A stretch of DNA of 64,000 bases from Styela clava (taxonomy: Eukaryota): NCBI RefSeq assembly GCF_964204865.1, contig NC_135257.1, positions 7,378,001 to 7,442,000 on the forward strand. The letters are read 5' to 3'. The translations under genes were made by a program, and so were the position numbers. The notes below the pieces were generated by a model, which searched no databases, was not told the origin of the DNA, and saw only the letters and a program-made list of their open reading frames with translations. Positions 963-59,285 of the stretch are shown here, in pieces. Position 1 is the stretch's first letter; every line of letters begins with the position of its first letter.

Positions 963-1325
963 CTTGACTCTGTCAAGTAAAGATTCCGATTCTTTGCCTA
1001 CGAGACTGTCCATGCTGCCACTCACGTCAATTACAAGGACGTAACGTAAAGGTAGCCGGCGTTGAAGTTTTGTTTCAATAGCCGATAATTCCATCACGAC
1101 TTCAACGATCTAAAATGTTTAAATTCAAAAATTAATTACGTCTAACGTTATGTATCGTCAGCAACCAATGCACTATACTCCCAGTCTCAGGTACGAGGAC
1201 AAGATACATTTTACTTCAATGCTTACCTGCTTTTGAGTAACTTGACAAAAATATTTGGTTTGAAGTTGATCTTTGCTTTTGGTGGTCGAGACTGCCGTAG
1301 CACCAACTGCTTGTGTTTTCGACAT
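963..1325 (-). CDS. vWA-domain gene paralog A, first two coding exons only (1325-1227, 1109-963); remainder lies left of the window or is lost
   Basis: Spliced reading MSKTQAVGATAVSTTKSKDQLQTKYFCQVTQKQ|IVEVVMELSAIETKLQRRLPLRYVLVIDVSGSMDSLVGKESESLLDRVK, with MIDAS DxSxS and GT-AG boundaries. Nucleotides ~960-1530 closely match ~11150-11720 of paralog B, including upstream DNA. Confidence 0.75.
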
Positions 1326-4300
1326 TTTAATGTTAGCTTTTAATTTATCACACTCCAATAATTACGATCTACATTATGGAGAACAAAAAAAAACAGCCTT
1401 TTATCGATTCAATCATCTTAAAGTAATAAAAATGCAATGTCGATTTAGCCATTAGTTAAGAGAAAAGCCATTTTCTCCAAAACAACAATAAAAACCTCAG
1501 CGATAACAATTTGGCAAAACTATCCATCGCCCATTTCGTGCCCAAAAATGCATCATCATTAATGTTAGACCTACATGGACGAAAGTACTGAAGGGAAACA
1601 TTTTAACATGATGAGCAAAGCAATTCTGTTTTTGCCTTCTGAGGCCTTCTGCTTTTGCGTGGTCACTCTACAGTAATCACCAAATCTATACAACTCTTGC
1701 ATAGGAAATGACCAAGTGCGCAATTTGATACTAGGGAAATCTACAATTGCTATTTCCTGAATCCCCAGTGTGAAACTATTGCTTTGCAAAACTTAAATCT
1801 GCAAATCAATTTCTTAATGTACAGTACAGCAATGGATTTTTTCATCCATTTTACCCACTTTGAGTCATATATGCAAAATAATCACTAAACTGCCCTTTAC
1901 AGCTCTTTTGAGGAAGAAATTGTACGACTACTTAAAACATTGGATGTATTTCAATGGCTTCAGTATCATTCGACTAAGTAATTACCGATTATAGGCTTAA
2001 GTTACAAAGAAACGAAAGTGCTTGACAAAAGAACTAAGTATTTGTTTTCTTTGCCTGATTCGCAGACGCTGAGATATTTAGACAATAGAAAAGCTTTGTC
2101 GAGTAGGTACACAACAAATGCATCTGACATTTTACTGTACGCATTCTGTATCTAATTAAATTAATACCTGTAATTTAAATAAGTCAATAAGTGAATGCAG
2201 CTCTACTTCGCTTTTTATCGTTATCTATAAGTATCTGTCCTTTCCGCATTTGCTCTTTCTTCGTCCTTACTGGCGCCGCCCCCCCTCATTTATTACCTTC
2301 ACCGCCCGCCTGACTTCGTCAGCTCTTTGATCGACCCTTTCTTCTCTCGACCTGTTTTCCTTCACTCGAATGCATCCGTCGACCTCCTCATATATTCTAA
2401 TCGTTAGGTTCCAAACTAACCTGCACTCGCTGCTCTTTCTCCGTCCTCGCTGACTCATGGGGCCCTCTTCTAATATTCCTTCGACCGCCTACCCACCCTC
2501 TCCCTCCTCTCGACCCGCCTTTCTTGTCTTGAACGCTTTCCCATCGTCTGACACATTTGAAGCGAAATTAATTCTTTTGGTCCTCCTGGCTAGCTTTCAG
2601 CATACCTCTGTACCCGTCATTAAAATTTGGCCTTCCTTGCCGGATTCGAACCTCGTTATACGTGTTACGCATGTCTGTGCTTTCTTTGCGCCCCCGCTAC
2701 CGGTTGGACGAGTGGAATCGAAATCTTACTTAAGCAACATATTTTATCGACGTCATACTTTGCAATCCCTACCATGGATCGAACAATATTGCACAGACAT
2801 GCTGCGTTAGTTGGAAGCACATTCATCCATGAGTGGAACTGCTGAAGGGAAGCCGTTCTCACCTTGATCTACCATGCGCTTTGGCTTAACTACTGAATAC
2901 GAGCTTGCATTCAAAACCGTTGGATCTTTTGCAAATGATAATTTCACGTTTTCATGCAAGGATCAATCAAAAGATCACAATTCTTGGTTTAACAGAACTA
3001 ACCAAAATGCAGCTATATTTTGAAGAAGGCGTTGCTTTGTTCAGCCATGTGCTGCGGTTTTGAAATTGAGGTGTCACGATTGTGCAAGGTGATCCAAAAC
3101 AAGTCGATTGATGAACGAGGTTGGGTAAAATTTACAATTATTGTTAACCTTACTATTTTACTATGTGCATTTTTATAGATTCATTGAGACTATGGAAATT
3201 TTAATGTTTAATTGAGACGCAACAAATTGCTATAGCGGAATATTTGTCCGACAAATGTAAATGATTAATTTTATTCAAATTTCACGGGGTTCATAATTAT
3301 TGAAAAATCGAATTACTTAAACATTCCCTTTCGTTTGGATAGATTTTATAGACACTAATATACTTTTGAATTCTTATATTGCTTATTATAGTATCGTTAA
3401 TTTCACGCGCGTTACATAAATAAACTTGTCAATATATTCGTTAAATACAAGTATAAATAAACAAAAATATTCAAATTAAAGAGCTATTTTTTTCAACGCC
3501 CAAAGATGGCATAATCAAGATATATTTACATGAAAAGCCAACAAGGCTATAAATCGCGACAATGCGATACCTTTACGAGAAATAAAGTAATTAGGTGCGA
3601 TGTGCGATATTACCCTTTTTTGTATGTGATGACGTCATCAGATTTGAAAATATTGCATCTTGTGAAAAAATACTAAGATAACAATAACATAAGTACAAAA
3701 GAATTCATATGTACATTCGTGCTGTTCAAAAACCATGAAGAGTTAAGTAGCCAGTGAATGCCGCGAACTTGATCGCACAGCAACAAAAAAAAATTCTGTT
3801 ATTATCATCTGTCTCATTGGGTTATCGGCAAGATACCTAGAGGCGTTGCTATGAACATACGAAGAAGACTTACGGAAACACAGTTTGTATTGGTAACTAC
3901 ACAGAATTAAATATAGAACATCATTTAGCAGCATACAGCATCAACTTATAAACTCAAATGACTATAGCGCATGCTTTGCGCGCATTTTACAGTCCATTAC
4001 TTATAACGTCATACGCGCAAAGCATTATTATGTGAGTGTTGGGACATTAAATCATTCTATGACATCAAGACACATCATCCATATATTAACTTATCTCTTG
4101 AAACATTCTAGATCAGATCAAAGAGCGGAATACATCGCAAAAATACCGTTCTATTTGTAGTCGATGCCGATATCACAGAAATGGCCGATACCGACAAATC
4201 GGTACATTTCTAATATCGATTGCCGCTAACAGTGCATATTAAACGAGTGCACAAATTACTTCTTTGATATTTGAATCAATTGGGGATGAAAAATAAATGA

Positions 4301-4607
4301 AGCAAAAATATTAAAATAACATGAGTTGTACATGCACGAAAAAAAATAGTAAACATTTTTCTCATATGCATTCTAAGTATTTCTAGGTAGCTTCTTTTCT
4401 AACTTCTACTTCATTTTTTCGGGGACATATATATATACATGCGATTGAAATATTAGATCATGCTGTATATGCATTATGCTGAATGTATATTTCAGCAACT
4501 TCAGGTCTCGATAAAATCGAACATAAATAAACTGTCTTCCGGTATAACGCACAGTAATTTATTATCATTTAGTTAGATCATCTGTTTTATCAAACTTAAA
4601 GTAGAGA

Positions 4608-7600
4608 TTATGTACTCATCGGGACCTTTATCTTATCTTTATTTAATAAATATGGATCTAGATCTAATATTTTCTTGTCTTTAATGCATTGATATATGTA
4701 ATCCTCTCGAACAATTGGAATCTGAAAAAATGTAAATATTACTTGAAGTTTGGCAGCTAATTTTGTGTAACACAGACGCAATGCGGTTATACCTTGGCTA
4801 TTTTCGTGAGAACTTTGGCACAAGTCTATTATTTGCAATGAGATTCATTTTTCAGAGGTGTCAATATGGATTAGGAATCGATTATGACGATGTATATATA
4901 GTACCCTCAAAAAATACAAACTTTAGCCCTTTTAGAATCCCGCACCAATACTGTATTTTTCTTGAAATCTTTGTCAGAACACACTAAAAATGTATTGTTG
5001 AATACCGTGTTGACGTTAGGTACTGCAAATAAAAAAAATGTTTCAATGATTCAGACACAAATGACGATTCACACACAACGGTTATACCGAAAAAATCGAA
5101 AGTACGTAAATTTACGTTCTGATTGCCACGGGTGGAAAGTTAATTTATGCAAATGTTTCCTACACCGGGTCATAAAGTAGCATGTTGAGAACTCAATTCG
5201 ATGCTAGTTTTTCCTAAACATGTTTTTGAAACAACGCTCACATGGGACATTCTAGAAATCATAACATTCCAGCTAAAACTGGGGAATATTTCGGTATACA
5301 AAATTTAAACGCTACCTGGTCTTCCCCCGCATTTGATGATTAAATCAGACATCGTTTCTCGTTTTGCGCCAACTTTCTTATCACGTAAAGCTTCAGACAC
5401 AAGAATGTTTTGAGCTTTGAAAACACTACAATAAAGCAATCTTACTTTATTTGATGATTACGTTGCTTAGTTCGTTTAATGGGTGAATAATGTAAATATG
5501 CGAATCGCATTTTGTTTATTATTGTATACAAAATCCGTATGATACCCATGCATCAAATCAAAATTCTTTTGAGCCGTTTGCTGAGACTTTTTCATCTTTC
5601 TTAACAAGGTTACAACCAACTATCAATACGCGATTTACAAGGGAACCATTTCACATTAAATATTATTTTATATAGGCCCCTACACTGGAATGAAAAACAA
5701 CTGTGGAATAGGCTAACAAAAAATCGTTCCTTATTTAATTGAGTTAATAATGCCTTAATGAATGAAGGCCAATGACTAACTGACAAATTAGTTTCATTGC
5801 GGTATGCTGCTAGCCAACTTATTTACCTTGTAGTTTGGAACGTTTTCATCTTGGTACGTTTCACGATCTGCATGTATGTAACAAGTGTTAATTTGTTTAT
5901 TTATTCAAATACTGAATTCATTGAATGTTTCTCAAAATAATTTATATGGAATAACTCTGAAAAATAAAACGGATCATGTCGTGAAATAGTTATCCTGAAA
6001 TGTTTCAACATATAGCGTTCAATTACCGACCTACCTTTTCATATTGTCTGAGCTTCTTTTCAATTTCAGGATGCAAATATGGCTGTTTCATTTTCGGATC
6101 GAAAACTCCTTTGGCTGTTGGCATTTCTGTAGCTATGGAGGATTGCATTGCAAAAAGTCTACCAAGACCATTTTCTCTATAAGCAGAATTAACAAACTAT
6201 TTTGTGTTGGAAATTTTTTAATTTTCTCGATGTCCAAGATATCCAATGTATAGAAATCGATATAGAGATATTTAGCCAAGTTTTGTATTGATACCTCGTT
6301 ACTTCAAAAGATAGCACTCGTTTACGATTGAGTTTAAAAAGTGATTTCAAATAACGACTCAGTGACTTGAGTAATGATGCTGTTTGATATCAGATATACA
6401 GCTATCTGTTTTAAATCAAAATTGATCCACTCGACTCAAATAATTCTGGTGAACCATTTATATTGCTTTTTCAGACATTTACTACTAAAACCTAAGATCT
6501 TACAATTCTTATGAACGTACGTTTTAATAGTTTTTCCAAAATTAAGTTTCTCTATCCAACCATCAGCACCATCGTTGAGTTGTTTTGCATATTTACTGCG
6601 ATCACCTAGTATAACCGTGTATTGTTTTTTAATTTCATTGATTTCTAAAATTGCATCTTGAATTGCTTTCCCATGACCTTTCATATCTCCATTGCTACAT
6701 GAAAATATAGTTAAATTTTTGAACTCTTATTCTTTATATATAAATTTGATTCAGGTTAAAATCAGCACAAAATGCTGTAGTATATAATACTATATAAACA
6801 GCCGTCAGCCGATCGAATAGGGTAGAAGAGTAGAATATTCAACACAACTTTCGTTATCTAAGATCGAGATCGATTACATACACCCACTTCTTTTTGTGTT
6901 TACGAGATGTTGTGTACACAAGTATTGCAAAATTGCTGCAAGCTCAACTCACATAATATAATATTCAGCATTATTCAATCCGATCATGCACAAATTTCTG
7001 TATTTTTCTTCAGCAATACAAACGAGAGAAGTCTGAGCTTCTATCCAATTGACGTTGACTGTTTTTTGAAAAATTGTGAACGACGATATTTCATTCATGA
7101 CAGCATCGGCTTCGTAACCTGAAATTTTCCACAATTGATATTTTACAATATTTCTTTCCAATATCGGCAATACTAATATTTTTCATGTGGAATTATCGAA
7201 ATGAAACTATATAGTTGACTATATGGTTGGTTAAGCACTCCGTTTTGAAGCCTACTGCAATAGCACAATCATCATGAAACTATAATATTGTCACGGAATT
7301 TTGAAATTAGTCTGCTGACCGTTAGCACTAGTTCAGACTGTTCTTTCCGTGGTTTCTTGTCTTGTATGTTTCATCAGTATTATATTACTACCTTTTCTTT
7401 CTCCCGATTTTTCGTTTTTGCATTCGCTCAAAGTTTTGGTGCATAGTATCACAAAATCATCCACATTCTGTTTATTCATCTTGTCGTCAAGATAACTGAC
7501 TTTTATATCGACAATATGCTGGTCATCCAACTCCTGTGTAGAAAAACAGATAGATAGTCATTAAATAAGTATTACATTATCACGAATTGTTTACTCTTAA

Positions 7601-10600
7601 ACGATGAAAACATTTAGTCTTTTAGACCAAACAACATACTTCCAATTCATCCTGAGGTAACACGAGTGTAAATGGAATATGCTTCTTGGTATCTTCTGGC
7701 ATTGCATGTATGAAGTACTTCAGCATCTTTCCGGAGGATTCCTGTAAATACAGGGTGTCTCAAAAGTAAGTATACACATTTAATTTTGATTTGCTTTTCA
7801 GGTACTTATCATAGAGCGTTAATTTCTTCAGAAAACATAGTATGGATAAATGGTAAAATTTAGGATATGTTTGCATTTTCCGACAACCCACAGAATGACA
7901 AGGAGATTAACTGACCCAAGAAATAAAGTGCAGAATTGCTGTTTGGCAAAAAGCATATCAATCAGTAAAGTAAACTCAGCCTCTCTTTAATAGAGAATTT
8001 GGAATTCATTCTGTTGTGAATGTTTTGCTCAGAGCGTCCGCTCCTTGGTGTTTCTGATCGTTGTGCATCAACTACAGATCCTTTTTTCATAAATTTACGA
8101 TAAATTACATAAATTGTTCGTCGTGTAGAAGCCGAATTAATTCCAAATTGTCAAACAGCAATTTTGCATCTCATTTCTTGGGTTGATGAAAAATGCAAAC
8201 AATACCTAAATTTTACTACTTATCCGTACTATGTTTCCTAAAGAAAAGAACGCTTTATGAAGAGTACATGAAAAGCAAATCAAAATTAAAAGTGTATACT
8301 TACTTTTGTAAGTACATCTTGTATATATATATATATATTTATATTATTTAATAATAACTTTGTTTATAATGTATTGTACAAACACTAAATAATGTTAATG
8401 AATCAATTCTGTGTTTCAGATCTTACCAATTAATCAAATTAATGTGATTTCACAAAAATTTTAAGATGTTACTCCAGTCAAACTCAGAAACATAATAGCT
8501 GGACAATGAATTAGCACATGCTAAACAAAATGAAAACAAGATTTCACTTGAATGAACGATCTACTTGATTTATTTTCTGATGACTACACTAATTTTCATA
8601 TCACTTTCGTAGTTTAAGCAAAACATTGTTTAAATATGCACTCATCATATAGACATGCATTTATGATGCAGTAAAATGGGGTAAGCCCCAGATGAGTCAC
8701 AAAACGCCATTTTTTCTCAATTTAACGAAATATTTTTGTCCTTGTAATTGGTCATATGTGACTGATGTTGAATCGTAGTCCTAAAAACTTCAAAACTGTT
8801 GTGATCATGAAAATAACCCTATCACAATTACCAGTAAATGTTTTCCATGAATGTGATTTTCATCGAAAACAATTCCTTTCAAGCAGTTCATGTCGATACT
8901 GACATCGGTAACTCGAGTTGTTTCCCTGGAAACATTGTACAAAGTTTGTGTTCTATGTTTCATTGTCGTCGGTAATAAACAAATATACCGTTTCCAAAAA
9001 CAAATAAAAGTCTACGCGTCTATGGTTACGAGTTCGTGATACTTGTTTATGCAAATCAGACATGAGAGACTATAATATTTATAACCATAACTTTTGGGTT
9101 TTTCAATATAACAACGTAGTTCCTTCAAACCTCGGCTCCGCTTCCAGTGGTTGAAAATGGTAGCTGAAAGTTCATTACTCATTTCAAAAAAATCTGTGCG
9201 CTCCATAAAATTCCTTTTTCCCTACGACGTTTTGTGTGATTACGCCTTAAAATTTGCGCACTGTACCGTGATTTCGTGATCAAATCTCAGTGATATGGTG
9301 GTCAGACTACGGGTACTGTAAAAGACTGATACTTTGTGTTGGCCTCCGTGTCCATATATTTGAGCATCCCCCCTTTTTATTATGTCATTTTTTCGCACAC
9401 TCATACTTTGTGTCGAGAAGCGAATGATTGATTGATAGACCAATATAGCGCCTTTTCATATATTTTCAAATTCGCATTATTTAGTAAATATTATTGACAT
9501 GATTGCGTAAAAGTGCTTTCATACATTATTTATATATACCTAAGAAATACAGGTATTAGCATGTCAGCCTCAAATTCCTCTTCTTCGTTCAACCAATAAA
9601 ACGCATCACTTCCGAGATGTCCTGCAATCTAAAATATAAAAAACAATTCCGTCAGAAACAAAATACTAGTAATTCAAATTAAAATAAATATTTCAAAAAC
9701 ATGAACTCAGATTCTAAAATATATTGTAATGCAAAATTAAACCAATTTACACCAATATGCTAGGGTAAAAACAAACGTTTATGTTGCTATATAGCCAGTG
9801 GCGTATCTACGTAAAATTGCGTACATGGCAAAGTTTAAAAATGCGCACCATTGGTCGTTGACTGATAATTTCAACGATTATAAAAAATTTTTATTGAAAT
9901 ATTTTACGTTGGAAACATTTCGCCCTTTTTGCGCCCCTACCCAAACCACAGTACAAAACCTCAGATACACCACTGTCCATAACTCTCGAATCCAACAACT
10001 CGAAAGAAAATGCAAATCAAGTGGAGGTATTTTGTTGAATGTTTATAGCTGACTATTGATTGAAACAATTGATGTAGCTTCGGCCATATTCTGTCAATGA
10101 ATGATTTATGTTATAGCGATGGACCTTAGCAATTTGTTTGGTTAAATGCACTATTATTAAACTTTTAGCACTCTCAGTTCACATTAATTTTTTTTGTACT
10201 GTATCAGTTTACCTCGTTCAGAAACACTGGTGCGTATTGACCGATTGTAAATGCGGAAATCGGTACACAGCTAGTTTTATTCATTGACTCCTGATAATTT
10301 TTGTATTTGATGACAAGTTGCTCCGGATCGGTTTCACCCGAATTGGCCATTCCATCCGTGAATACAATCATCAAATCTTGATCATGCTTTTCAGAATCTC
10401 TAGATAATGAGGAACGTTACAAAAACGTAACAAAATGAAAGAACTGTGAATTTGTTTTATGGAAGCTTACTGTTTAAGCACATGTAATCCTGCCATCAAT
10501 CCAATTTCGAGATTAGTGCCACCTCTTGTATGGAGACTTCTAATAACGTCTTTTGCTTTAGTCTGAAAATATATATATACAGATATATATACGTACAAAC

Positions 10601-11512
10601 ATAGATGATATGGTTCAATAATATTTCATTTTTTTTTCGAATAATGGTCGTAGCATTTGTTGAAAACACTGTGCGAAATCCACCAGAAACCCGAACAATA
10701 CCTTGTACCCAAGCCTGGATTTGGTTTAATTTTGCCAAGTTTATGAGAACACAATCTTTTTCATATGTGCTTTTACGCAAGCCCAAGCTCGCCTGGAAAG
10801 CAAAAAGTTGTCATACTTGGGTACATACCCGGCCTTTACACAAGACCAGGCGAAGGAATCAAACTTTGTGTAAACATAATATCGCAATATATAAAATGTA
10901 TATATATACATAGTGGAGCGATTCAGTTATTTTAGAATACTACGATTATTACTAACCTTAGCGGCATTGTTCATCACAGTCATCTTCATATCTGTATTGA
11001 CATCACGAGAAAACGTAACTATGGCGAGTGAATCTGCATTTGCGATGTTTTGTACGACCAGTTCCGCGAATATCTAAATAAAAATAAAATTTTCCCTAGG
11101 CAGGTGGCTGTTATTCATAACGTTGCCACTTTTTAGCAGTATAATATTACCTTCACCCTGTCGAGTAAAGATTCTGATTCTTTGCCTATGTGACTGTCCA
11201 TACTTCTACTCACGTCAATTACAAGGACGTAACGTAAAGGTAATCGGCGTTGAAGGTTTGTTTCAATGGCTGATAGTTCCATCGCGACTTCAACGATCTA
11301 TAATGTTCAAATTCAGAAATAATTACTTCTAAAGTTTTGTATTGTCAGCAATCAATGCAATGTACTACTAGCCTTGGATACAAGGACAAGGAATATTTTG
11401 CTTCAATGCCTACCTGCTTTTGAGTAACTTGACAAAAATATTTTGTTTGAAGTTGATCTTTGCCTTCGGTGGTCGAGACTGCCGTAGCACCAACTGCTTG
11501 TCTTTTGGACAT
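4608..11512 (-). CDS. vWA + Vwaint-like middle + C-terminal BRCT protein, paralog B (~16 exons, ~640 aa)
   Basis: Exons at approx. 11512-11414, 11297-11151, 11073-10957, 10563-10472, 10400-10213, 9628-9540, 8926-8833, 7741-7640, 7534-7393, 7118-6953, 6697-6521, 6177-6035, 5867-5827, 5428-5316, 5022-4922, 4721-4608. Motifs: VLVIDVSRSM, LAIVTFS, GGTNLEIGL, MIVFTDG, ISAFTIG (vWA). C-terminus: SVFKAQNILVSEAL..RETMSDLIIKCGGRP|VPNV..TFLVCSDKDFKKNTVLVRDSKRAK|IPIVREDYIYQCIKDKKILDLDPYLL (BRCT pattern). Confidence 0.8.
7751..8321 (-). mobile_element. Tc1/mariner deletion derivative in an intron of paralog B
   Basis: Imperfect TIRs CAGGGTGTCTCAAAAGTAAGTATACAC / GTGTATACTTACTTTTGTAAGTACATCTTG flanked by TA. 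Internal minus-strand remnant STRRTIYVIYRKFMKKGSVVDAQRSETPRSGRSEQNI resembles a mariner-type N-terminal HTH region (GRPR-like motif). Confidence 0.75.
9796..9975. mobile_element. short hAT-like MITE
   Basis: Ends CAGTGGCGTATCT / AGATACACCACTG are inverted repeats; the TSD is degenerate. Confidence 0.5.
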
Positions 11513-12999
11513 TTTATTGTTAACATTTAATTTATCACACTCCAATAATTACAATCTACATTATTAAAAAAATATATTAAAAATAACAGCCTTCTATCGG
11601 TTCAATAATCTTTAAGTACTAAAAATGTGATATCGATTGTGTCATTAGTTGCGAGAAAGCCGATTTTCCAACAACAACAGCAATAACCTCAGCGATAAAA
11701 ATTAAGCAAAACGATCCATGCGAACCAAATGAATCCACAAGTTTTGGATGCGGCACTGGAAATGAGTTCTGAACTAAATATCCTACATGTCACAAGTACA
11801 ACGTGATATGGTTTAATATTTTTCCGAATCGACTAAACTTAAAGGGAAACCTTTTTAATATTGTGAGCAAAATACTCTTTCCGCCTTTGTTCTCTTAAAT
11901 TGTTATTTGTTGATCTACTCGACTGGGAGTTGCTTCTTTCTTTCATAACGTATAGTTTCAAGTTTGTAAACAACAACCATTCAATGTCAACGAGTTTCCA
12001 TGAATGTACTTATTTCCTATCTCCGATCTAACAAATCTACTTATTTGTTATCTCCGACTATTTGTCCTCGTGCTGCTGACTTGTAATATTTCAAGTGTTG
12101 TGTCACGGCGACATCTTCTCCAAAACAATACACAACTATGTAGCTTGTCATTGGTTGCTTACGACTTTTATGTCAGAAACCGTCCTAACTTCAATCCAGA
12201 ACCAATAATTTTTGCATATTTATTTGCATTGAACACCAATTTTCAATTTTGATTTGTTGAGACGAATCCCAATGAAACATATCAGAGGCGGGGAACCCCC
12301 GTGCAATATTTGTATGTTTTGCTGTATGTACGAATAATTCTAAAAACTGTGAATGTATATACAAACGAAAGCCTAAAATTTGTAAAAAAAAATCTTTAAA
12401 ATGTAGAATGTCTAATAATAGTGATAAACTCAATAAGTATATGATTATATTAAAACAATGTAAATATAATAATATAGGGAACCACTGTACTGGCGGAATT
12501 TTAGGCCTATGGTGCCACGGAATCCCGCGTGAAAACAACTCCTATACACATACAGTATATTGAAATGTATTTTATTTAGGAGTTTAACAAGGAAAGTTTC
12601 CGAGCAACGCTCTTCGTCCTAATATTTTAAAAGGCATATTAATAATGCTACGTCATTCAAGCTGTCACAATTCGATGACAATATATTATGGTATACTGTA
12701 AATAGTATCGGTCAAAAAACGAGCAAAATCTTTACAGCTGAACATTAAATAACACTGAAATAAATACATGATAAATTGATAAGACTGAAAAATTTAGAAT
12801 GCCGAATTCGTAAGAAAAGAATATACAAGGTCGAATGCATAGGATTGAAGAAACGGCGATCGAGGAACCCATGTGCACCCATCTAATTCTACGATAATCC
12901 AGTCATGATATAGTATCCAGTATATGGTAATTTTATCAATTGTTTGAGCGGAAAATGGGTCTCGCATTATGAAGATCCTTCTTCCAGGCATTCATGATA

Positions 13000-15900
13000 T
13001 TAACTTTTTCGAAAAAGATAACTTTCCATATTTAAAAACTTTTTTCTTCTAATGCATTCAAACAAAAAATCCTTCCGAACGATTGGAATCTGAAAATTAA
13101 GACATAATTTCTTAGCATCTTATTATGATAAAATAAGTTATCATACGCTTATTAAATATTTGTATATAACTTCTTAGTGAGAATGTCTTTTAGACCCCAG
13201 AAATGTGAATATGAAAATTATATATTTTTTAAATTTTTAAATAAGAAGCCTATTTCCAAAATAATTTATTGTGTGAGAATTGAGACGATGAGTTTACAAA
13301 TATGAATTTAGTTCATAGTAATTAAAAGTAAATTTCATGTCTGCTGGTAGAAATCCATCATCAAATCCTTCATTGTACTTAGACTTAGTATGTTATTGAG
13401 TATACATTGTACCTTTACTTTTCTAGAATCACGAACTGACATTGAATTTTTTTTATAATCTTTTTTGCAACAAACGAGTAAGAAATCATCATAGTTCTTT
13501 TCGACATACCAGCCAGGTCTCATTTTATAAGGATTCACAATAACAAAATATTCTGAAAACAAGTTCTGTCAAATAACACTCGCCATAAAGCTAATTTATT
13601 TAATATTTTTTCTAGTTTGATAAGTCCTCAATTTTAAACAATAAGCTGTATATATTTAGATTTCTGTATATACATGTTTTACAGTTTTATATATATATAA
13701 ATCGTTGTATCACAAATGCTATGGTTTTATTAATGCTATGATTTTATTAATTTTCATTGATAAAATCGATAACTACCTTGCAATTCATATACTTTAAATG
13801 AGTATTATAACAAGATAAATGAATATTATAATAAAATATATTCATATTTATTTTCTTTAACGGAAATATTTGACTATTGGCACTATTTGAAAATTGCGCT
13901 ACGATTGTATGGTTGTATGGTAACATTGGACTTCACCAACAGTTTTTTGTTTCATCGATTAAAGTCTCTATGTAAAAAGATTGTAAATTAATATTTTTTG
14001 AGAAAAATATACAATACCTGGCCTTCCTCCGCACCTTATTACAATTTCTGCATACGATTCTCGTTTCGCTCCAATTTTTTGTGTTCGCAAAGTTTCTGAT
14101 ATGAGTATCGTTTTCCCTTCGAATACTCTACAGATAAAATTAAAAATTTGTCATATCGTCACGCTAATAACCGAATTGCGTAAGCCATTTTTAGAAGTTT
14201 TGAGAAAAACGTAAAAAACTTCCTAATGATATTGTTATGCCATTGAGAGTCAATAATTTGCCATGGTTCAATTTTTTGATCGTAGCCGGATTTAAGTTAA
14301 TTTGTATTATGCAGTTAAGTGACGTCATAATGGCGCACTGTGACTCAGGAAGAAATGTGTCTATGACTTGGGGACATACGCATTTTTGCAACTTTACTAT
14401 ATGCACCAGTCCTGAAAACCAAACATTCCAAAAACGAATGTATTTCTCAGTATCTACAATGTCTAATCTCCAAAATAGCTAATCAGTTTCAATTACATTA
14501 TTTTTTATGTTTAAAAATATATATTTTATCAATATATATAACACGTTCTGCACACCCACCGAAATAAGACTAAGATTAAATAAAAAGAATAAAACAGCAA
14601 TGCACCCAATATAAAAGCCAACCAAGGTGTATTGGACTCGGACAATGAATATCACAAGTGCACGCCTTCCTATACTGTAGTATAAATTCAAATTAATACG
14701 CACTAAGCTAGAATCCGAGATGCAAAAACTCGAAAATACTTCGCCGAGGTTATTTTGCCTTTGTGGCGTCACAATAGTCCTGCGGTAACAATGATAAATC
14801 ATTATGACGAAACAATTTCACAAATGTGCATGTCATACTAAATCTCCGTTTTTATGAGTTTCGGAATTCTTAAAATAAAATCTGAGTTAACAGACAGGTG
14901 CGCAGCATCACATAAATACCTATTTTATAAAAAACTCAAAATTATCAAAAATGACTTACGCAATTCGGTTATTAGCGTGACGATATGTCATCTCTGTTTT
15001 TCTTTAAAATTCAAGACGATTCTCCGTAATTAAGCGGTTAAGTTACACAAATCATAGATGTTTAGACTGCCATACTGTATTTCATTATTTTTGAAATTTG
15101 AAAAAGAGCTATGAATGGCGATTTTAAATGTAATGTAGTATATTTTGATGATGATGACTTTCAACGAGGTTGTTCTAGTAGAATTTGAGTGATGATTGCC
15201 AATCATGTTCTTTATTTAGATGTTTATTTGGGTAGTTATTTACTTTCAGTTCACAGATGTCAAAGCAACGGCTTTTGAGCAAGTGGATATTATCTCAGAA
15301 TTGCCCAGTCCACTACCCGTAGCTACGAATAAGCGAAATGTGAAAAATCTTGGCAGTTTTACATCTAAATACAAATATTCAAACAGATCTCTAAAACGTA
15401 CTTGGAGGTTCCGAAATCTTCAAGCCTTTTGAACTTTTTTACAATCTGAAACAAACGAAAGAGAGAGAGAGATTTTATAGGAAGGAAAATGCGTAAAAAT
15501 AAATTATTGTTTCGACAAATACCATTGAGTTGGAGGAAATTCCAAATGATGCAACTGTTCGCGGAAACAAATAGTCATTTAAGAAGATTGCACAAGATAT
15601 ACGCAAAACTACTGCCAGGTAATATGCTGCGAAGTAATTCACCTAAACTGAAAAAGTACTTATTTTAAAAAATCAAAACTTTTTATCAACAGGTTAAATA
15701 CCTACTCGTTCGTATTCTCTCAATCTTTTCTGAATATTTTTGGGCATGTACAGTTGTTTTTGCTCCATGTGATAAACACCTTTTGCAACGGGCATTTCTG
15801 TAGCGATTGATGATTGTAAAGCTGCGATTCTTCCGTAGTTATATGGACTGTATACAACAAAATAATAAACCGGAAATAAAAATCAGAATTTTTTTATATG

Positions 15901-18900
15901 AATTAAAAGATAATTTTAAATAGATAATATAATATCACCAATTGAAATTTATTGTAATATGGCCGAGAGACCATGAATATATTTCATTTGGAAAACGCAA
16001 AAGCGTCAAACACAAGAAACCCCAATTTCTTTCATTCTTCAAGTTAATCTACCTCTATCTCATTTCCAAACTTATGACTTGCAAATCGAGAATTAGCATC
16101 ATGGTCAGTGCTCATACATTACTTTAGTAGAAGTATGTACATAATTTAATTTTTACTTCAAAATCAGCATAGCAGGTGATAAAATAAAGCGAATTGAAAC
16201 TGATTACAGAATTAGATTGCAAGACTTTTTTTATATTCCACAAACATTTCTACATTTACAACAATTAGCTGTGACTTTTAATGGTGGAATTTGATATTTG
16301 ATAACTTCTGATACATAATAGTTGGCGTCGATTGTTGATTAACGGCGAACCCAAACCCTATGGGACAGCATAGCGAGATAGATGGACGCGAACCCATGTG
16401 CACGAGTCGTAAGTCATTGTGGCATTGCTGTGTGATGTGAAATCTACCGAGTTATTAATTGGAAATTTTGGAATGTACTTACTTGGCGATAGATTTGCCA
16501 AAGTTCAACCTTTCAATCCAGTCATCTGCACATGCGTCAATTCTTGCTGTGCACTGATTCTTATGTCCGAAAATGACAGTTCTGTACGTTGTCTTGATGT
16601 CGAGGATACTGGAAATGGCTTGTTCAAAAGAATTGACTGTGAGATGATCTTCCTCTTCTCTAAAACGAATAATAATTAGTATATATTGCAATCGCAAAAT
16701 ATGCTAAGATTCGATGCAAATTGAAGTAAAGTAGATTAAACGGAGTGTGGAAGGATTGCAACACATCAGTGTATAGATAGAATATTCAATATTGTATAAT
16801 ATTGGGTACCCCTGAAGTATGCGCGCCAAGATGTCGCATAACCTGAACCCTAACCTGGTACACAACTTGAGTTCAGGTTGTGCGCCATTTTGGTGCGCAT
16901 ACTTCAGGAGGTCCTAAAATTGTATAGAGGAGTTTGATAGCTACCGGTATATGTGGGATTAGTAGCGCGAATGATGAAAAATCTTGATTTACGACGGCAT
17001 AACATCGTATGTGAGTTTTCGAAAGCGCTACCGGCGCAGGCGGTAATAGCGCTACTGACCACTGATCGCAACGAACGAGATTTAATTTTAAGTTAATTCA
17101 TCCGTTTATTAAAGAGTTTTAAAATCTCACAGTATATGGTATAGAACGTTGTCCAGTTCATTCATACTCAATTCTCTACAATCTTCTCTCACGATCATTT
17201 CTAAAGCTTCCTGAGCTGCAATCCAAGATGAATCCACTATATTGTTTTCAATCGTGTACGCTGCAATGCCGTCAGTGATATCTGAGTATCTTACTCCTTT
17301 TTCTGCCATACAATTGTGAAATATTAAAACAACGTCATAATATACTAGCAAATTGAACTTTGGTATATGAGCGCACTTAGTAATTACCGATGTATTAATG
17401 TATGTAGTAATACATGTACCTACCTCTTTTACCTCTGGCTCTGCATTTCCTCAAATTCAAAGCAGAAAATAATACAAAACCGTTTAACTCTCTCTTTTTC
17501 AAGCTTCCATCCGTAAAGCTAACTTTGATTTCGACAATCCTTTCCTTTCGAAAATTCTGTAAATTGAGATAATTTTGATTATATGCATATGTTTGATTGA
17601 ATTTAAAAAACGGTGATATACAATTACATGTATTGTTAGTCGATGTTGAAAAATTATTACAATTATTTATATTTTTGTCATTATTCCAAACGTGGTAAAG
17701 AAATTTACAACTGCAATGTGAGCGGAGTATAAAGTTTAGCGATTGTCGTTGTTTTCACTCTTATCTGTTATGCGCACGGGTAAAACTGTACAATTTATAC
17801 ATAAATGTAAGGGTATTGTTACTATTTGTTCGCTTTGTAAATGTAAGTCAATATGCCTCGAGTCCCAAGATTACTTCTGCTTATTTGATTGACATAAGTT
17901 GCTCTATTATACATAACAATATCATATTATACTTTACCTTTAAACTCCTCTCAGGTGGGATGATTGTAAATGAAATGTGTTTCTTGACTCCTCCCGGTAT
18001 AGAATGCACAAAATATTCCAGTTCTGACAGAGATGAGCTCTGTGACGGCAAAATTTTACTGTTGGCGCATTCAAATATAAATAATTAGGTACATTGTAAT
18101 CACTGAAGTAGTTAAAAATTTTTTTTCTCAGTTAATGTTTCTCTTCAACTACTGGACAAATTGCGTTAGAATTTTCAGTGGTTAAAGATTGTTGTTGTCG
18201 CTAAACGTTTATTACTTTATTCATTCCTAAATTTTCCATGAATCCCATGATATTTGATATCCAAAATTATGCAGTTATATTTTTACTCGTGGAACGCGGT
18301 TTTTAATCCGCTAAACGTGACAACTGACTTCAGTTTTGAGATCGCAAACTCGTGTCACGCGAAAGTCGAAATCTTTTCGATACCAGTGACGCACTGTAAA
18401 CTAGGTAAGGTAAGTTACTGTAAACGGTAAAGTACTGTAAACGATTTGAAAGTGCATTTGTGAGTCACATCATTTGATATTTTAATTCACTCTGGCACAA
18501 TACGCATTAATTGCCATCGTTACATAGGGCCGGGTAATGCTAGGACACTCCGGGTACAGGTTCTAGTAAGTTCAGAAGTTATCATGCTCCACAGTTGCAG
18601 TTTCATCCACTTAGATATGATTTATTGGGAAATTGTGGGTAAAAAATATTTAGTTTAAGCCTCCTTGTACTTATATTTGAGCATTGTTCTCTTGTTGCTT
18701 GAAGTCCTTAAGCAATAATTTACGCTGCCCTGTCTAGATGAGTATTAGGTATGGATAAAATGTTACTTGTAAATGTTTTCTTGACAAGGAATCGGCATCG
18801 AATGTAAAATCCAACAAGCACTTCATTTGAATAGTAATGTCTGATATTGCAGTTGTCTCCCTGTCATATAGTGATAGTGAAAAAGCGTAGATAAATAAAA

Positions 18901-21115
18901 ATTAAAACCGCCAAAAAGATTTACATAATCTTATATCAATAGAAGTACACCTGTTTACTAACGAGACGAAGACATTATGCTGAATTATTGATGATATGCT
19001 GTTAATCAAGTGGTTATAGAAATATATATAATAACTTATATACTGGCTCAGTTGTTTTTGTCACCTCAAAAATATTGGAAGAAGCATATCGGATTCAAAG
19101 TCTTCTTCCTCGTTCAACCAGTAAAAAGCTTCACTTCCCAGAAAATCAGCTAACTGAAAACATTACGGATTGATTATAGAAAGTCAGTACAATTCTTTCG
19201 GAATTTACGAAGTTAAAAGAATTCAATGATCGTATTTGTGATTGTAACAAACTTCTGTAATCTCACTTCTGCTAATAAGACAGGGAGGTATTGGCCGATT
19301 GTGAATGCTGATACGGGAACACAAGTTTTTCTTCCCATATTATCTTGACGTTCTTTGTAATGTTTCACCAGAGCTTCTACATCTTGTTCCCCTGTGTTTG
19401 TTTCTCCGTCGGTGAAAAGTATAATGCAGTCCCGGGAATGTGGCGAAGGATTCCTGGTTTGAAATATTCTACGTTTAATTGAATGCTCCCTTTCTGCTAG
19501 TTTTTTTTTTCAAGGTATTAATTTGTATTGATATCTATACATAAGAACAAAATTTACTTTGCTATGACATCAAGTCCAGCCATCAATCCGGATTCCAGGT
19601 TCGTGTTTTGCTTCGTATGAAGATATTGCACAACATTTCTTGCTAATTCCTGAAATTAGTAATTAAGTTGATGTATTCTTAGAACTTGCATTTGCGGGTT
19701 TTTTATTGTAGTGATGGGATTCAGTTTAATTTTCCCCATCTTGGTATATCTATTGGCTAATTAAGGTAACCATTGATCACGGCTTTCTCCACACACCACC
19801 CAAACGCATCTATTCTTTACTTTTATTTTTTTGATTGCATATGAAGTAAACCTAATTTTACACAATAAATAGGCATTGGTATTAAACAAGTAAAGCTATT
19901 GACTTTTTCATCTTCTGACATGACAGTCATTTCTAACTCCACTTCTGCTTCATCGGAAAACGTCACAATTGCCAAAGAATCTTCTTCTGATATTTCATCA
20001 ATGACTAATTCGGCAAATATCTGAACCAGAAAAATTTAAAACTTGATCATTATTGTAGCTTGTATTTAGCTAATAGCTTCACATTAGGATTAACTCGACA
20101 AGCATTCAGGATGCTCCGCTTAGATTGGTATTTTAAAGGACAGCCTCCAGTTTTCCTGACCAAAACCCGTAGACTTTCTAAATTTAATTTTGTACCTTCA
20201 CTCTGTCAAGAAGTGAATCAGGTCCATGACCGATTTCAACTCCCATACTGGAGCTTACATCGATGACAAGTACATATCGCAGTGGAATGTGCTTAGTCAT
20301 TGACTTGTTTGTTGCCCAAATTTCTGTCACGATATCAACACTAGGATCCCCAAAACTTTTTACCTGCAATGAAAAATCATGAGTGTATAATTACCATGCA
20401 CGTAAACAAAAATGCTTAAAGAATCCTATGATATTATTTATTTTAAATGGTCAAATATGACCATGGTTTTTAATATTGGCAAGAGAATAGAACATAAATA
20501 TATATATGTATCTGTTATATAGGCATGGTTTAATTTATACTGCGTTTATTTGAGATTTATACTATTTTAGTAATATTTGACTACTTCGACCTTTGACTCC
20601 AAAAAGCTCCTTTGACGTTTTCTCAAACCTATACCAACAAGTTTACATGTTTAAAACCGCAATTTTTATTTAAAATATTCAACCACTTGCCAATATAGAC
20701 CCCCCCACAATCAATTTTATTTAGAACCTTTTTTGATAATCTGAGTCTCTACTATAGATACGATTAAACAATAATTTATACCGAAATTTATGACACATAA
20801 AAAATAACTGACAATCTTTACAACAAAGCTTCAAAATCCGTACTTTTCAAAATAGTGAGCGTCTGCTAAAATTACAATTGGTATGTCACCGTTGAATTAT
20901 TGCTGATTTGTCACTGTTACGGAAATGAACGAGGAAGGCTATGCCCCGGGAAGAGAAAAAAAATACGAAGTTATTTATTTTATTCCTATATTCTAATAAT
21001 TACCAACCTTTCCATTGTTGACCTGGCAGTAATGCTTTGTACAAAGTGTATTTCTATCACCTTGACTGTTTCTTTCTTTTTCATCACAATCGCTGTCACT
21101 CGATGATGATGACAT
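13000..21115 (-). CDS. vWA + Vwaint-like middle + C-terminal BRCT protein, paralog C (same exon layout as B)
   Basis: Exons near 21115-21008, 20363-20196, 20020-19904, 19649-19558, 19453-19267, 19153-19065, 18861-18768, 18040-17938, 17556-17433, 17303-17131, 16665-16492, 15848-15704, 15445-15402, 14129-14018, 13552-13413, 13089-13000. Motifs: VLVIDVSSSM, LAIVTFSD, NTNLESGL, IILFTDG, AFTIGQY, FYWLNEEEDFESDML. BRCT: VFEGKTILISETL..RESYAEIVIRCGGRP..FLLVCCKKDYKKN..IPIVRKDFLFECIRRKKFLNMESYLF. Confidence 0.8.
14150..14990. mobile_element. non-autonomous DNA transposon with ~40-bp TIRs in an intron of paralog C
   Basis: CATATCGTCACGCTAATAACCGAATTGCGTAAG at ~14152 and its reverse complement CTTACGCAATTCGGTTATTAGCGTGACGATATG at ~14955-14987. 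Confidence 0.7.
16806..16914. repeat. ~105-bp hairpin MITE family, copy 1 of 5
   Basis: Palindromic arms GAAGTATGCGCnCCAAGATGnCGCAnAACCTGAAC ... GTTCAGGTTGTGCGCCATnTTGGTGCGCATACTTC; other copies at ~42160, ~50416, ~60467, ~62923. Confidence 0.8.
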
Positions 21116-45686: not shown

Positions 45687-46933
45687 ATGATGATGTTTAA
45701 GGTAACACTTATCTGTGCCCTTCTCGGGTGTGTCTTCGGACGTCAATACAAAATAGTCGCGGAGAGTGAGATTGATATCCAAGGAATGAAAGATCGAGTA
45801 TCCTACTTCGACAAATCGTGGCGTGACATCTTCAACGAAAAACAGCTTCACAGACAACCAAAATGGAAGATTGTTGAGAATGATACCGAACACAAATCGT
45901 ACGAAGTTCGTCAATACGACGAAGCCTGGTAAGCATTGTAGTCATTCGTCCGAACGCAAAAATATTTGCGTACGAAATGATATCTGTTAAAATAGGATGT
46001 ATTGTTTTGATAGTTCGAAAACATCGCTAAGGACTACACAACTCTTTCAATATTTCTGGCTTATGTCAGTGAGTGTATTTAACGTATCCAATATCTCAGC
46101 TAATCTCAAGAAATATACTAATACTAAAGTAATAACTACTAAACTAAAACGTTTTATAGTATGTATTATTTTACTTCCGCAGATTTAATATTTGTATTAA
46201 AGTATTCCAATATGAAAGCTTTGTTTTGTTTAGATTTTTATTCAGTGCTGCATTCAGGCATTGGTATTACAATTTACATATTTCTAGGTTTGTGTCTTCA
46301 CACACTCCCTGTCTGAATCAGAGCGAATCTGCCGCTGATGGTTACGTTCGCCTTTACATCTTCATGGACATCAACAATGTAAAGCACCCAAACCAATATC
46401 CTCTTACCTACCCGATCTTGTCAAAGGTTGAATTGGGAGCTGAAGCCATTGATCGTCATATCAAAACCAGTGGCGATAACGTCCGCGTTTCTGAAACCGA
46501 CAAAGAACAGGTTTCAGCAAACAAACCCGTTGAATATGTCGTCGGCAATGAGCGCATCCGGTATACACCCCAGCACAAAACCCCGATCGTCGATGGCAAA
46601 GCTAAAGATTTGAAGAGTATCTGTCCTGACCGTTTCTCTCAGCAATTTTACCTTCCAATCCCAGTAACCCAAACCCCACCCAAACCCTCTGATGTTAGCA
46701 TCTCTACTGATTTAGTCCCAAAACGCACTTACTTTGTTCGCCGATACGCTGACGAGTTTACTCACGAAAGTCAGAGAAATTGCAACCTCCAGGCTGGTCT
46801 ACTCGCCCGCACTTTGGCACTCTCTGGTGTTCGATTCAACCCACGCTCATATTATTGCGCTATGTACGAACCAGGTACTAGTGACGTCACAGCCCATTTC
46901 GAAGTTTGGTTTGAAGCCGTGAATGAAATGTAA
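45687..46933 (+). CDS. secreted SOUL/heme-binding protein (HEBP2-like), 2 exons (45687-45928, 46288-46933)
   Basis: Signal-peptide-like MMMFKVTLICALLGCVFG. SOUL motifs: PKWKIVE..SYEVRQYDEAWFVS, GYVRLYIFM..N, PLTYPI, FYLP..TPPKPSDVSI, YFVRRY, YYCAMYEP..EVWF. GT-AG intron restores a Trp codon; AATAAA at ~47124. Confidence 0.9.
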
Positions 46934-57625: not shown

Positions 57626-59076
57626 ATGGATTATTCAGCAGCCGTCACTTCAACTCCTGCTAGTGAAGACCCAACCACGGAAACAAGAAATGCCAGACCG
57701 AGATCTTTATTTATGAAAACCAACCTGAATCTGGATTTTACCAAACTAATGGGTATACTACGAGAAAGCGATAGTACAAAGGAATATGTTAAACATATTA
57801 AAGGACTATATGAAAGCCGAAAAGGATTATGGATTATCACATTTGCGGCCACTGAAAATCAAAATACTTTCTAAATGCAACCAATGGAGAAATGAGAGTT
57901 AATGACTCTCTAATCTCCATAACTTTGCCCAGTGGAGCCCCAGTACGGATCTCAATAAAAGAAATTCCTGACGAAGCATCGTACGCTAAAGTTGCCGCAA
58001 TAATCAATCAACTGGGCTGTGGCAAAGTTCGAAATGTAATTAGAAACTGACACAGAGGTACCGCTGTTTACAATGGTTTTACATCTTTCTTGATAGAAGA
58101 CTTTAAGAAAGACAAATTACCAGACTTTCTTATGATAAACGGGATAAGATGTAAGACCTATCTCCCACGAGAGATGTATATTCCAACATGTGGGCGGTGC
58201 TTAGAAAGTGGACACACTTTCATAAACTGCGAAAAAGAGGCAGTATGCCGTTATTGCAAGGAGTCGGGGCACATTAGAAAAAACTGTAAACAAAGGGCGA
58301 TGGACTACCCAACGCCCTCAAACCCGATTCAAGCATGGGCCTTGCCTAGACAAAGAAGACCGCAATTAAACAACGTGACGCATACACCTCGTAAAACTAT
58401 AGAACAAAGTAATAAAACGCCCAGGAAAACAAACAACATGGAAGACAAAGCACTCGACAACACACGAAAGGTAATTAATTATAATGAAGACCAATCAACC
58501 AAAAAACAAACATCGGAAAACCCTATAATTAAGGTAGTCCAAAATGACACGGTTTGCGAGTTTTCCTCGTCTGCCTCTGATCTGCACAATACAAAAGAGC
58601 TAAGCGATTGGTCTGTGTGTGAGGATGTCTTAAGTCCACTAAATTCTCCTCAGGAAAACCTACAACCTGAAACACCACCAAAAGACGACGCACAACCCGA
58701 ACCACCATCGAACGGAGTCCAGCAAAAGAAACAAAATAAACCAGTTGGTCTAAGATCCACCTCAACAATAGGAAATACACCGTACCACCCTAAATCAAAA
58801 GGACTCCCCCATGTTAAAGTTATGGTTCACAATATCGAATACCTGGACTCATTGAATTAATCGGTATTTTCAGATACCCCAAGAGAAGTATTATCGGCCC
58901 CAGCTGATTTGGAATCTAAAGAAAACTCCGATCTATCCGAAATAGCATTTGATAATTTGGAATATACAAATAAAAGAAACAGAGAAGATACCTCCTCATC
59001 TGAAACCTCCGAAACAACCAGAAAAGGAAAAAGCAACAGAGCACCAGGCAAGAAAAAGAATACAATGGGCACGTGA
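57626..59076 (+). pseudogene. L1/Tx1-clade LINE ORF1 (gag-like, CCHC zinc knuckles), disrupted
   Basis: CGRCLESGHTFINC and CRYCKESGHIRKNC knuckles; frameshift near 57865, in-frame stops at ~58048 and 58858; low-complexity C-terminus. Confidence 0.85.
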
Positions 59077-59285
59077 CCTAGGATCAGAGACGTCAACACT
59101 TGCAATTCTGGTAGGAAAAAAGGAAACATACGTGAGTAGAAATTGATTTTTCTCTCGATAAATCGAAACAAACACGTTCTAGTGCTGTATTTTCTAAAAT
59201 TATATAATAATGGATAGATCACGAGTCATAACTAATTTTACCACAACCAGGAGCTTAGACCTTTCGGCCGCCTATATAACTCGAT

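Follow-up and report, generated by a model that had tools for sequence, protein, structure and literature searches.

A tandem gene family of Styela clava joining a vWA module of predicted ArnB/WAV3-type fold to a C-terminal BRCT domain

We analysed a 64,000-nucleotide stretch of the Styela clava genome (C9:7378001-7442000; hereafter the window), in which three paralogous genes, here called A, B and C, lie in tandem on the minus strand and encode proteins with a vWA domain followed by a C-terminal BRCT domain. Genome-wide searches covered the 377-Mb assembly; the window itself is AT-rich, with about 33-38% G+C. Exon maps were obtained by exact protein-to-frame matching of the RefSeq proteins, with GT..AG borders in each gene. 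The results showed 16 coding exons in each paralog, with 653 of 654 residues placed exactly for C (P0026), 579 of 580 for B (P0040) and 638 of 639 for A (P0023), the single unplaced residue in each case being a split codon. Only exons 1-2 of A lie within the window; exons 3-16, including the BRCT exons, were located in C9:7368001-7378000 by tblastn of the B exons and by the mapping. Database proteins shown to fit these exons were used for all full-length analyses, and single exons were scanned separately. The genes and their parts, in window positions, are as follows.

Paralog A: LOC120346725; proteins P0001 (618 aa) and P0023 (639 aa)
963..1325, minus strand: A coding exons 1-2 (exon 1, 1227-1325; exon 2, 963-1109), from the P0023 mapping
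1014-1028, minus strand: DVSGS motif in A's MIDAS (metal-ion-dependent adhesion site)
Paralog B: LOC120346726; proteins P0038 (638 aa), P0040 (580 aa) and P0041 (532 aa)
4611..11512, minus strand: complete coding region of B, 16 exons; P0040 exact, P0038 adds exon 11 at 100%
9539..11512, minus strand: B exons 1-6, two N-terminal strands and vWA; exon-wise VWA fragments, precomputed VWA/VWA_2 matches in P0038 and P0040, VWA above cut-off in P0001 of A
11202-11216, 10512-10523 and 10351-10362, minus strand: MIDAS motifs of B (DVSRS, the T of GGTN and the D of FTDG, respectively)
7390..8927, minus strand: B exons 7-9, beta-sandwich strands after the vWA, colinear with C exons 7-9 (strands 257-348 in the model)
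5829..7119, minus strand: B exons 10-13, four-helix bundle, conserved loop QSSIATEMPTAKGV (6104-6145) and basic linker
4611..5427, minus strand: B exons 14-16 (5317-5427, 4922-5023, 4611-4721), BRCT; BRCT_2 fragment in exon 16, precomputed BRCT_2 matches in P0038 and P0040, above cut-off in P0001 of A
Paralog C: LOC120346390; protein P0026 (654 aa)
13003..21115, minus strand: complete coding region of C, 16 exons, start codon at 21113-21115, from the P0026 mapping
19064..21115, minus strand: C exons 1-6, N-terminal strands and vWA, with the VWA_2 and VWA matches of P0026 given below
20247-20261, 19599-19610 and 19405-19416, minus strand: MIDAS motifs of C (DVSSS, the T of QNTN and the D of FTDG, respectively)
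17425..18862, minus strand: C exons 7-9, beta-sandwich; model strands 257-348, ArnB alignment, joints 18039|18767 and 17556|17938
15401..17303, minus strand: C exons 10-13, four-helix bundle (model helices), conserved loop QSSIATEMPVAKGV (15775-15816) and basic linker
13003..14126, minus strand: C exons 14-16 (14019-14126, 13413-13553, 13003-13089), BRCT; BRCT_2 35.9 bits on P0026 residues 542-649, exon-16 fragment 23.2 bits

An earlier sequence-only reading of this DNA had described three minus-strand paralogs with B and C colinear, and this is borne out: 14 stop-free minus-strand segments of B and C are colinear at 33-73% identity. The end points given there, 963 and 21115, are the low end of A exon 2 and the first base of the ATG of C, and all the motifs it quoted are present, including QSSIATEMPxAKGV. 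The same reading held that the short exons had hidden these genes. This did not stand, as RefSeq and UniProt already contain models of all three genes, named only 'uncharacterized protein'. The RefSeq isoforms of B are X1 (638 aa), X2 (580 aa, without exon 11 at 6520-6693) and X3 (532 aa, without the BRCT exons).

We then compared contigs from public sequencing runs with window positions 13000-18999, using runs that held about 20% of the words of this stretch, equal to its exon fraction. These runs are only guessed to be RNA; spliced joints of the kind described here would not arise from DNA. For C, the spliced contigs showed joints at exon borders 7|8, 8|9, 9|10, 10|11, 11|12, 12|13, 14|15 and 15|16, and the excised parts end in CT..AC, which is GT..AG on the minus strand. 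One contig of 1795 nt led from C exon 13 upstream past exon 8 and then beyond the examined stretch. The BRCT exons of C are joined at 13552|14018 and 13089|13413, and a further joint, 13089|14018, skips exon 15. In addition, P0036 is an uninterrupted open reading frame (ORF) of 657 aa with VWA and BRCT_2 matches, carried by a Logan contig of 2968 nt from a relative; since an uninterrupted frame here comes from a 16-exon gene, this contig is a spliced transcript. The exon order ending in three BRCT exons is common to A, B, C and an unlinked paralog on C1, LOC120341230 (P0035). These findings indicate that the vWA and BRCT domains belong to one transcript and one protein, and that A, B and C are expressed. 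The exon-15-skipping joint of C, together with the B isoforms lacking exon 11 or the BRCT exons, is evidence for alternative splicing.

The vWA domain was assessed by Pfam scans. P0026 matched VWA_2 (PF13519) with 54.3 bits (cut-off 27) and VWA (PF00092) with 52.5 bits (cut-off 23.8). In an alignment of eight members, VWA_2 matched all eight and VWA seven at E<=1. Exon-by-exon scans of B and C gave only sub-threshold, colinear VWA and BRCT_2 fragments, which are not decisive alone. The MIDAS residues D71, S73, S75, T147 and D177 (P0026 numbering) are invariant in the eight sequences from Styela, Ciona and Branchiostoma, so the site is complete, as had been read from the letters. Both this assembly and the current RefSeq isoform have DVSRS in paralog B, while the older RefSeq/UniRef protein P0038 has DVSGS and several other residue differences. 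The discrepancy reflects different alleles or assembly versions of a heterozygous species; the x position is non-coordinating, and the MIDAS is unaffected.

The C-terminal domain was examined in the same way. Of the six full-length proteins with a BRCT that were scanned, five (P0001, P0005, P0015, P0021 and P0026) matched BRCT_2 (PF16589) with 33.7-44.9 bits (cut-off 27.3), while Ciona P0018 reached 24.6 bits, under the cut-off. BRCT (PF00533) scored 31 bits in P0021 (cut-off 21.3), and BRCT_2 matched all eight aligned members at E<=1. A phmmer search of PDB sequences with the first BRCT exon gave nothing at E<=10. Isoelectric points of the eight members were 4.4-5.1 for the vWA in all, 9.0-9.8 for the BRCT in all, and 10-11.7 for the K/R-rich linker before the BRCT in seven. 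Kyte-Doolittle scans in 19-residue windows found no N-terminal hydrophobic stretch, signal peptide or transmembrane segment; the most hydrophobic windows (1.2-1.9) are mostly core strands of the vWA, and none lies near the N-terminus.

We next modelled P0026 with AlphaFold2 from the eight-sequence alignment. The model was confident, with a mean predicted local distance difference test score (pLDDT) of 82.5 and a predicted template modelling score of 0.75. In this model, only about 40 residues, forming two strands (24-33 and 44-53), precede the vWA (64-256). Six predicted strands follow it (257-268, 284-287, 291-300, 304-312, 325-334 and 340-348), and then a four-helix bundle (390-421, 425-451, 456-478 and 481-496), whose last helix is closed by an invariant S-S...E-x-P loop. 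A linker helix leads to a beta-alpha-beta-beta-alpha-beta-alpha unit at 548-640. The order of these elements fits the BRCT fold, and pLDDT in this block is 57-89; the vWA module dominates the structural match lists.

The best structural matches span model residues 22-498. ArnB (8s05_A) aligned over 366 of 381 residues with a Z score of 26.3 and a root-mean-square deviation of 3.6, followed by a Catenulispora vWA protein (4fx5, Z 24.5) and ArnE/VWA2 (5a8j, Z 23.8); the bundle is included in all three alignments. Foldseek matched Sec23/24 at E 1e-10 to 1e-13, and giant-virus vWA proteins across the three-domain module at E 2e-26 with TM scores of 0.73-0.76. In the ESM Atlas, the whole protein resembled giant-virus and other vWA clusters at 0.86-0.88, which is below the 0.9 guide and gives leads only, and residues 257-654 gave no usable match. 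ArnB has been described as an eight-stranded sandwich split by a MIDAS-bearing vWA and joined to a regulatory four-helix bundle, an arrangement shared by YfbK, Sec23/24 and the WAV3 E3 ligases, with WAV3 closest outside archaea (PMC12852372). By predicted structure, the A/B/C family thus belongs to this ArnB/WAV3-type class of three-domain vWA proteins, with two strands before the vWA, six after it and the bundle. The results as a whole show a soluble protein of about 620-650 aa, composed of this predicted module, a short, strongly basic linker and a single basic BRCT domain.

Comparison with known systems places the family more closely. ArnB and ArnE of Sulfolobus, 4fx5 and YfbK-type proteins have the same vWA-split eight-stranded sandwich and C-terminal four-helix bundle, and for the first three nearly the whole target could be aligned, whereas the identity of ArnB, ArnE and 4fx5 to the Styela family is only 13-16%. 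The prokaryotic proteins stop at the end of the bundle and use a separate FHA/zinc-finger partner, ArnA; the Styela family has its BRCT in cis and an animal host. TFIIH p44/Ssl1, Rpn10, INTS13/14 and Ku70/80 are likewise intracellular proteins that use the vWA as an assembly or adaptor module, but only the vWA aligns (Z about 20). Most of these nuclear assembly factors lack a complete MIDAS, and their flanking domains differ from those of the Styela family. Membership in Ku70/80 was rejected, with a single sub-threshold Ku_N match in one amphioxus paralog (16.2 bits, cut-off 20.6) and no Ku protein among the top structural matches. Sec23 and Sec24 are alike in their vWA-like trunk, beta-sandwich and helical arrangement, but they are without a functional MIDAS. 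Sec23/24 membership was also rejected, as no zinc finger, gelsolin or Sec23 Pfam match was found, which leaves a core structural resemblance only. Among intracellular eukaryotic proteins, WAV3, EDA40, the Lr9-type vWA-Vwaint proteins and Vint carry the same vWA-sandwich-helical module on a signalling domain, a likeness taken from published description (PMC12852372), and the vWA-Vwaint module is thought to mediate protein-protein contacts (PMC10260399). Their partner is a RING, kinase or Hint domain, whereas that of the Styela family is a BRCT. Vwaint (PF14624) itself had no match at E<=1 in any of the eight members, and a six-frame search of the whole genome gave nothing at the A, B and C loci at E<=10. 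The WAV3-type layout proposed in the sequence-only reading is therefore upheld at the level of the fold by the ArnB and 4fx5 matches and the published comparison (PMC12852372), while the label 'Vwaint-like' fails by sequence.

To describe the range of the family, we searched for its exons and proteins. The diagnostic vWA exon was found at at least nine genome loci: three in the A/B/C cluster, one on C1, one more on C9 and four on C13. The four C13 loci lie within about 200 kb (C13:2601838-2796368) and form a second cluster. A, B, C and the copy on C1 showed BRCT exons. In the other C9 gene, LOC120345745 (P0012, 1489 aa; C9:11182001-11202000), the vWA module is kept, and a single 707-codon exon and further exons replace the BRCT; Pfam finds no domain in the replacing region. 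Orthologs with an N-terminal VWA and a C-terminal BRCT were found in Ciona intestinalis (LOC100178306; P0018, UniProt F6TCI5) and, in the same order, in three Branchiostoma species or hybrids (P0015, P0021, P0045-48). When the 66-aa vWA exon was used for an exhaustive HMMER search, whose sensitivity to distant phyla is low, 22 proteins were returned, and all named ones are from Styela, Ciona or Branchiostoma. A word-index protein search with the C protein, the family alignment and the amphioxus middle region returned only Styela and Branchiostoma relatives and a few generic prokaryotic vWA proteins, but this index missed even the Ciona and amphioxus members of the query itself, so that its blank beyond chordates means little. 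No family member was found in vertebrates in limited searches.

In a maximum-likelihood tree, the Styela paralogs grouped together and the amphioxus proteins formed their own three-branched clade; Ciona was on a long branch, and its placement is unsure. The tree paired C with P0036. If P0036 comes from another species, the split of C from A and B would predate that speciation. The introns of A and B can be aligned over 6.3 kb with 79-85% identity, whereas no intron similarity was seen between B and C. Substitutions were counted by the Nei-Gojobori method, summed exon by exon. For A and B, the synonymous rate (dS) was 0.17, the nonsynonymous rate (dN) 0.04 and dN/dS 0.25, with 0.27, 0.24, 0.25 and 0.20 in the four domain blocks; the B-C and A-C comparisons were saturated at silent sites. 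A and B arose by a recent segmental duplication, and the low dN/dS between them indicates that both are under purifying selection. The family is common to invertebrate chordates and has expanded separately in each lineage. The claim that it is lineage-specific and expanding therefore holds for the expansions only, the architecture itself being present also in Ciona intestinalis and Branchiostoma.

Based on these results, we favour, as probable but well short of certain, the view that the A/B/C-family protein is an intracellular, probably nuclear, adaptor. BRCT domains are typically found in DNA-damage and chromatin scaffolds. The basic linker could act as a nuclear localisation signal and, together with the BRCT, would tether the protein to a phosphorylated or polyanionic ligand, such as a phosphoprotein, poly(ADP-ribose) (PAR) or DNA. 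The MIDAS metal of the acidic vWA module may capture an acidic residue of a client protein, while the sandwich and helical bundle might provide surfaces for regulation or for partners, in the manner of ArnB and Sec23/24. Splicing that omits the BRCT exons would give untethered forms.

Several observations weigh against this view. The BRCT is divergent, and its matches to solved BRCT domains are insignificant (Mdb1, E 0.007; Chs5, 0.013; PARP1, 0.06). Phosphopeptide-binding BRCT domains have S/T-G in the beta1-alpha1 turn and T/S-x-K where alpha2 starts. In the alignment, the serine of the turn (S552) is invariant, but the next residue is Glu or Asp, not Gly, and the register of the pocket lysine, read from the alignment with no superposition, is ambiguous within '(C/S/T)KKD(Y/F)KK' or 'CTKEE(Y/F)EK'. 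Because the glycine is replaced and the canonical lysine is not confidently placed, phosphopeptide binding by the BRCT is not established. The nuclear placement is probable only, being drawn from the basic linker and the usual habits of BRCT proteins. Some paralogs are without a BRCT, namely LOC120345745 (1489 aa) and amphioxus P0019, which means that the vWA module can work without it. The 13|14 joint of C was seen on a single contig of 296 nt, where a run of 10 letters at the exon 14 edge does not agree with the window and may be an allele or an assembly error. A literature search that included the locus names found no paper on any member, and localisation, ligands and partners are all inferred here. 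A complex prediction between the vWA module (22-536) and the BRCT (540-654) scored 0.00; run without controls, it weighs neither way.

Four other explanations were considered. The vWA and BRCT exons might be separate adjacent genes joined by an annotation artefact, for which one could cite the B isoform X3, which stops before the BRCT, and the short contig on which the exon 13-14 link depends. This is largely refuted and scarcely credible: spliced joints 12-13, 13-14, 14-15 and 15-16 were all seen, the 657-aa ORF runs uninterrupted on its 2968-nt contig, and the exon order with the BRCT exons recurs in A, B, C, the unlinked C1 paralog and the Ciona and amphioxus proteins. It is also very improbable that the family is a degenerate or rearranged relative of the VIT-vWA proteins (PARP4, VWA5A and ITIH) that kept the BRCT-vWA association of PARP4. 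The vWA is of the same broad sequence type in all of these, the nearest solved vWA domains by sequence are those of ITIH1 (E 2.6e-8) and ITIH4 (E 3.8e-7), and PARP4 is the only characterised animal protein known to combine BRCT and vWA. However, no VIT or PARP catalytic domain was found in any of the eight members at E<=1, the BRCT is C-terminal here and N-terminal in PARP4, and the PARP4 BRCT matched only at E 0.11; by domain content and order the protein is not a PARP4 ortholog, in line with the different PARP4 layout pointed out in the sequence-only reading. ITIH1 did align structurally (Z 23.5 over 338-354 residues), but less completely than ArnB, 4fx5 and 5a8j. ITIH proteins are secreted, whereas the Styela family is without a signal peptide.

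An immune or conflict sensor (the sequence-only reading had suggested stress or innate-immune sensing), in which the vWA is a bait or sensor for pathogen molecules, the BRCT couples it to a response and an arms race drives expansion, is rather unlikely. It would suit the independent expansions, which comprise at least nine loci with tandem copies in Styela and occur also in amphioxus, and the three-domain module shared with giant-virus vWA proteins (Foldseek E 2e-26; Atlas look-alikes at 0.88, a lead only). In plants, vWA/Vwaint modules fused to kinases in the rust-resistance protein Lr9 are proposed decoys (PMC10260399). Yet A-B dN/dS is 0.20-0.27 in every domain, with no diversifying selection seen at this resolution, Pfam scans of members found no effector, death-fold or NTPase domain, and the MIDAS and many core positions have been invariant over about half a billion years. 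A single-chain phospho-switch, whose BRCT would read phosphorylation of its own or a paralog's helical bundle and so open or close the module, like ArnB and the FHA protein ArnA in one chain, appears quite improbable. It draws on the closeness of the fold to ArnB, the invariant S-S...E-x-P loop at the end of the last bundle helix and the position of the BRCT directly after a flexible basic linker. Phosphorylation of the ArnB bundle is followed by binding of the ArnA FHA domain to it, and gelsolin occupies that place in Sec23/24 (PMC12852372). Against it, loop phosphorylation and BRCT phosphopeptide binding are conjectural, and the canonical pocket is only partly recognisable.

An intracellular adaptor remains our preferred reading. 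Literature searches found no paper describing an ArnB/WAV3-type module with a C-terminal BRCT, and the A/B/C family is a new combination of known domains. The ArnB/WAV3/YfbK-type module is known from archaea and bacteria, from giant viruses, and from plants and fungi; in every case it is fused to, or works with, a signalling domain, be it FHA, RING, kinase or Hint. Animals, at least the invertebrate chordates, kept it with a different partner, the BRCT. Since the family is kept from amphioxus to tunicates and limited searches found none in vertebrates, it is a candidate component of a chordate-ancestral pathway lost by vertebrates. A bolder and decidedly unlikely extension is that of an ancestral chordate signalling protein, absent or unrecognisable in vertebrates, in which an ArnB-like switch is fused to its own phospho- or PAR-reading BRCT as a one-chain counterpart of ArnA-ArnB, recruiting MIDAS-bound clients to damaged or modified chromatin. 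If true, the tunicate and amphioxus expansions would reflect diversifying client specificity. The Ciona ortholog LOC100178306 is in a genetically tractable animal, which makes function directly testable. The family is of moderate practical weight: its two domains are well known, its genes are already in RefSeq, and there is no sign yet of an unusual mechanism.

Two introns of C contain other elements. Intron 10 holds an element of about 120 bp (16800-16925) whose two strands match each other at about 80% identity and which has at least 1968 candidate genome copies at 93-96% identity. Its self-complementarity and many copies mark it as a palindromic miniature inverted-repeat transposable element, and its repetition accounts for the contig depth of 2,800-21,000 seen there in the transcript-like runs. 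In intron 13, each of the four runs had a contig depth in the hundreds at positions 14150-14990, with many shared differences from the window, and this stretch is probably another expressed or repeated element. An Rfam search of window positions 1-24000 found nothing.

The neighbouring sequence showed no functional link to A, B or C. On the plus strand, an open frame at 46226-46930 carries a SOUL haem-binding domain (E 2e-12) and belongs to an unrelated neighbouring gene. Further along the same strand, the open frames at 58090-60037 encode a CCHC zinc knuckle and an endonuclease or reverse-transcriptase-type endonuclease domain and are the remains of a non-LTR (long terminal repeat) retrotransposon.

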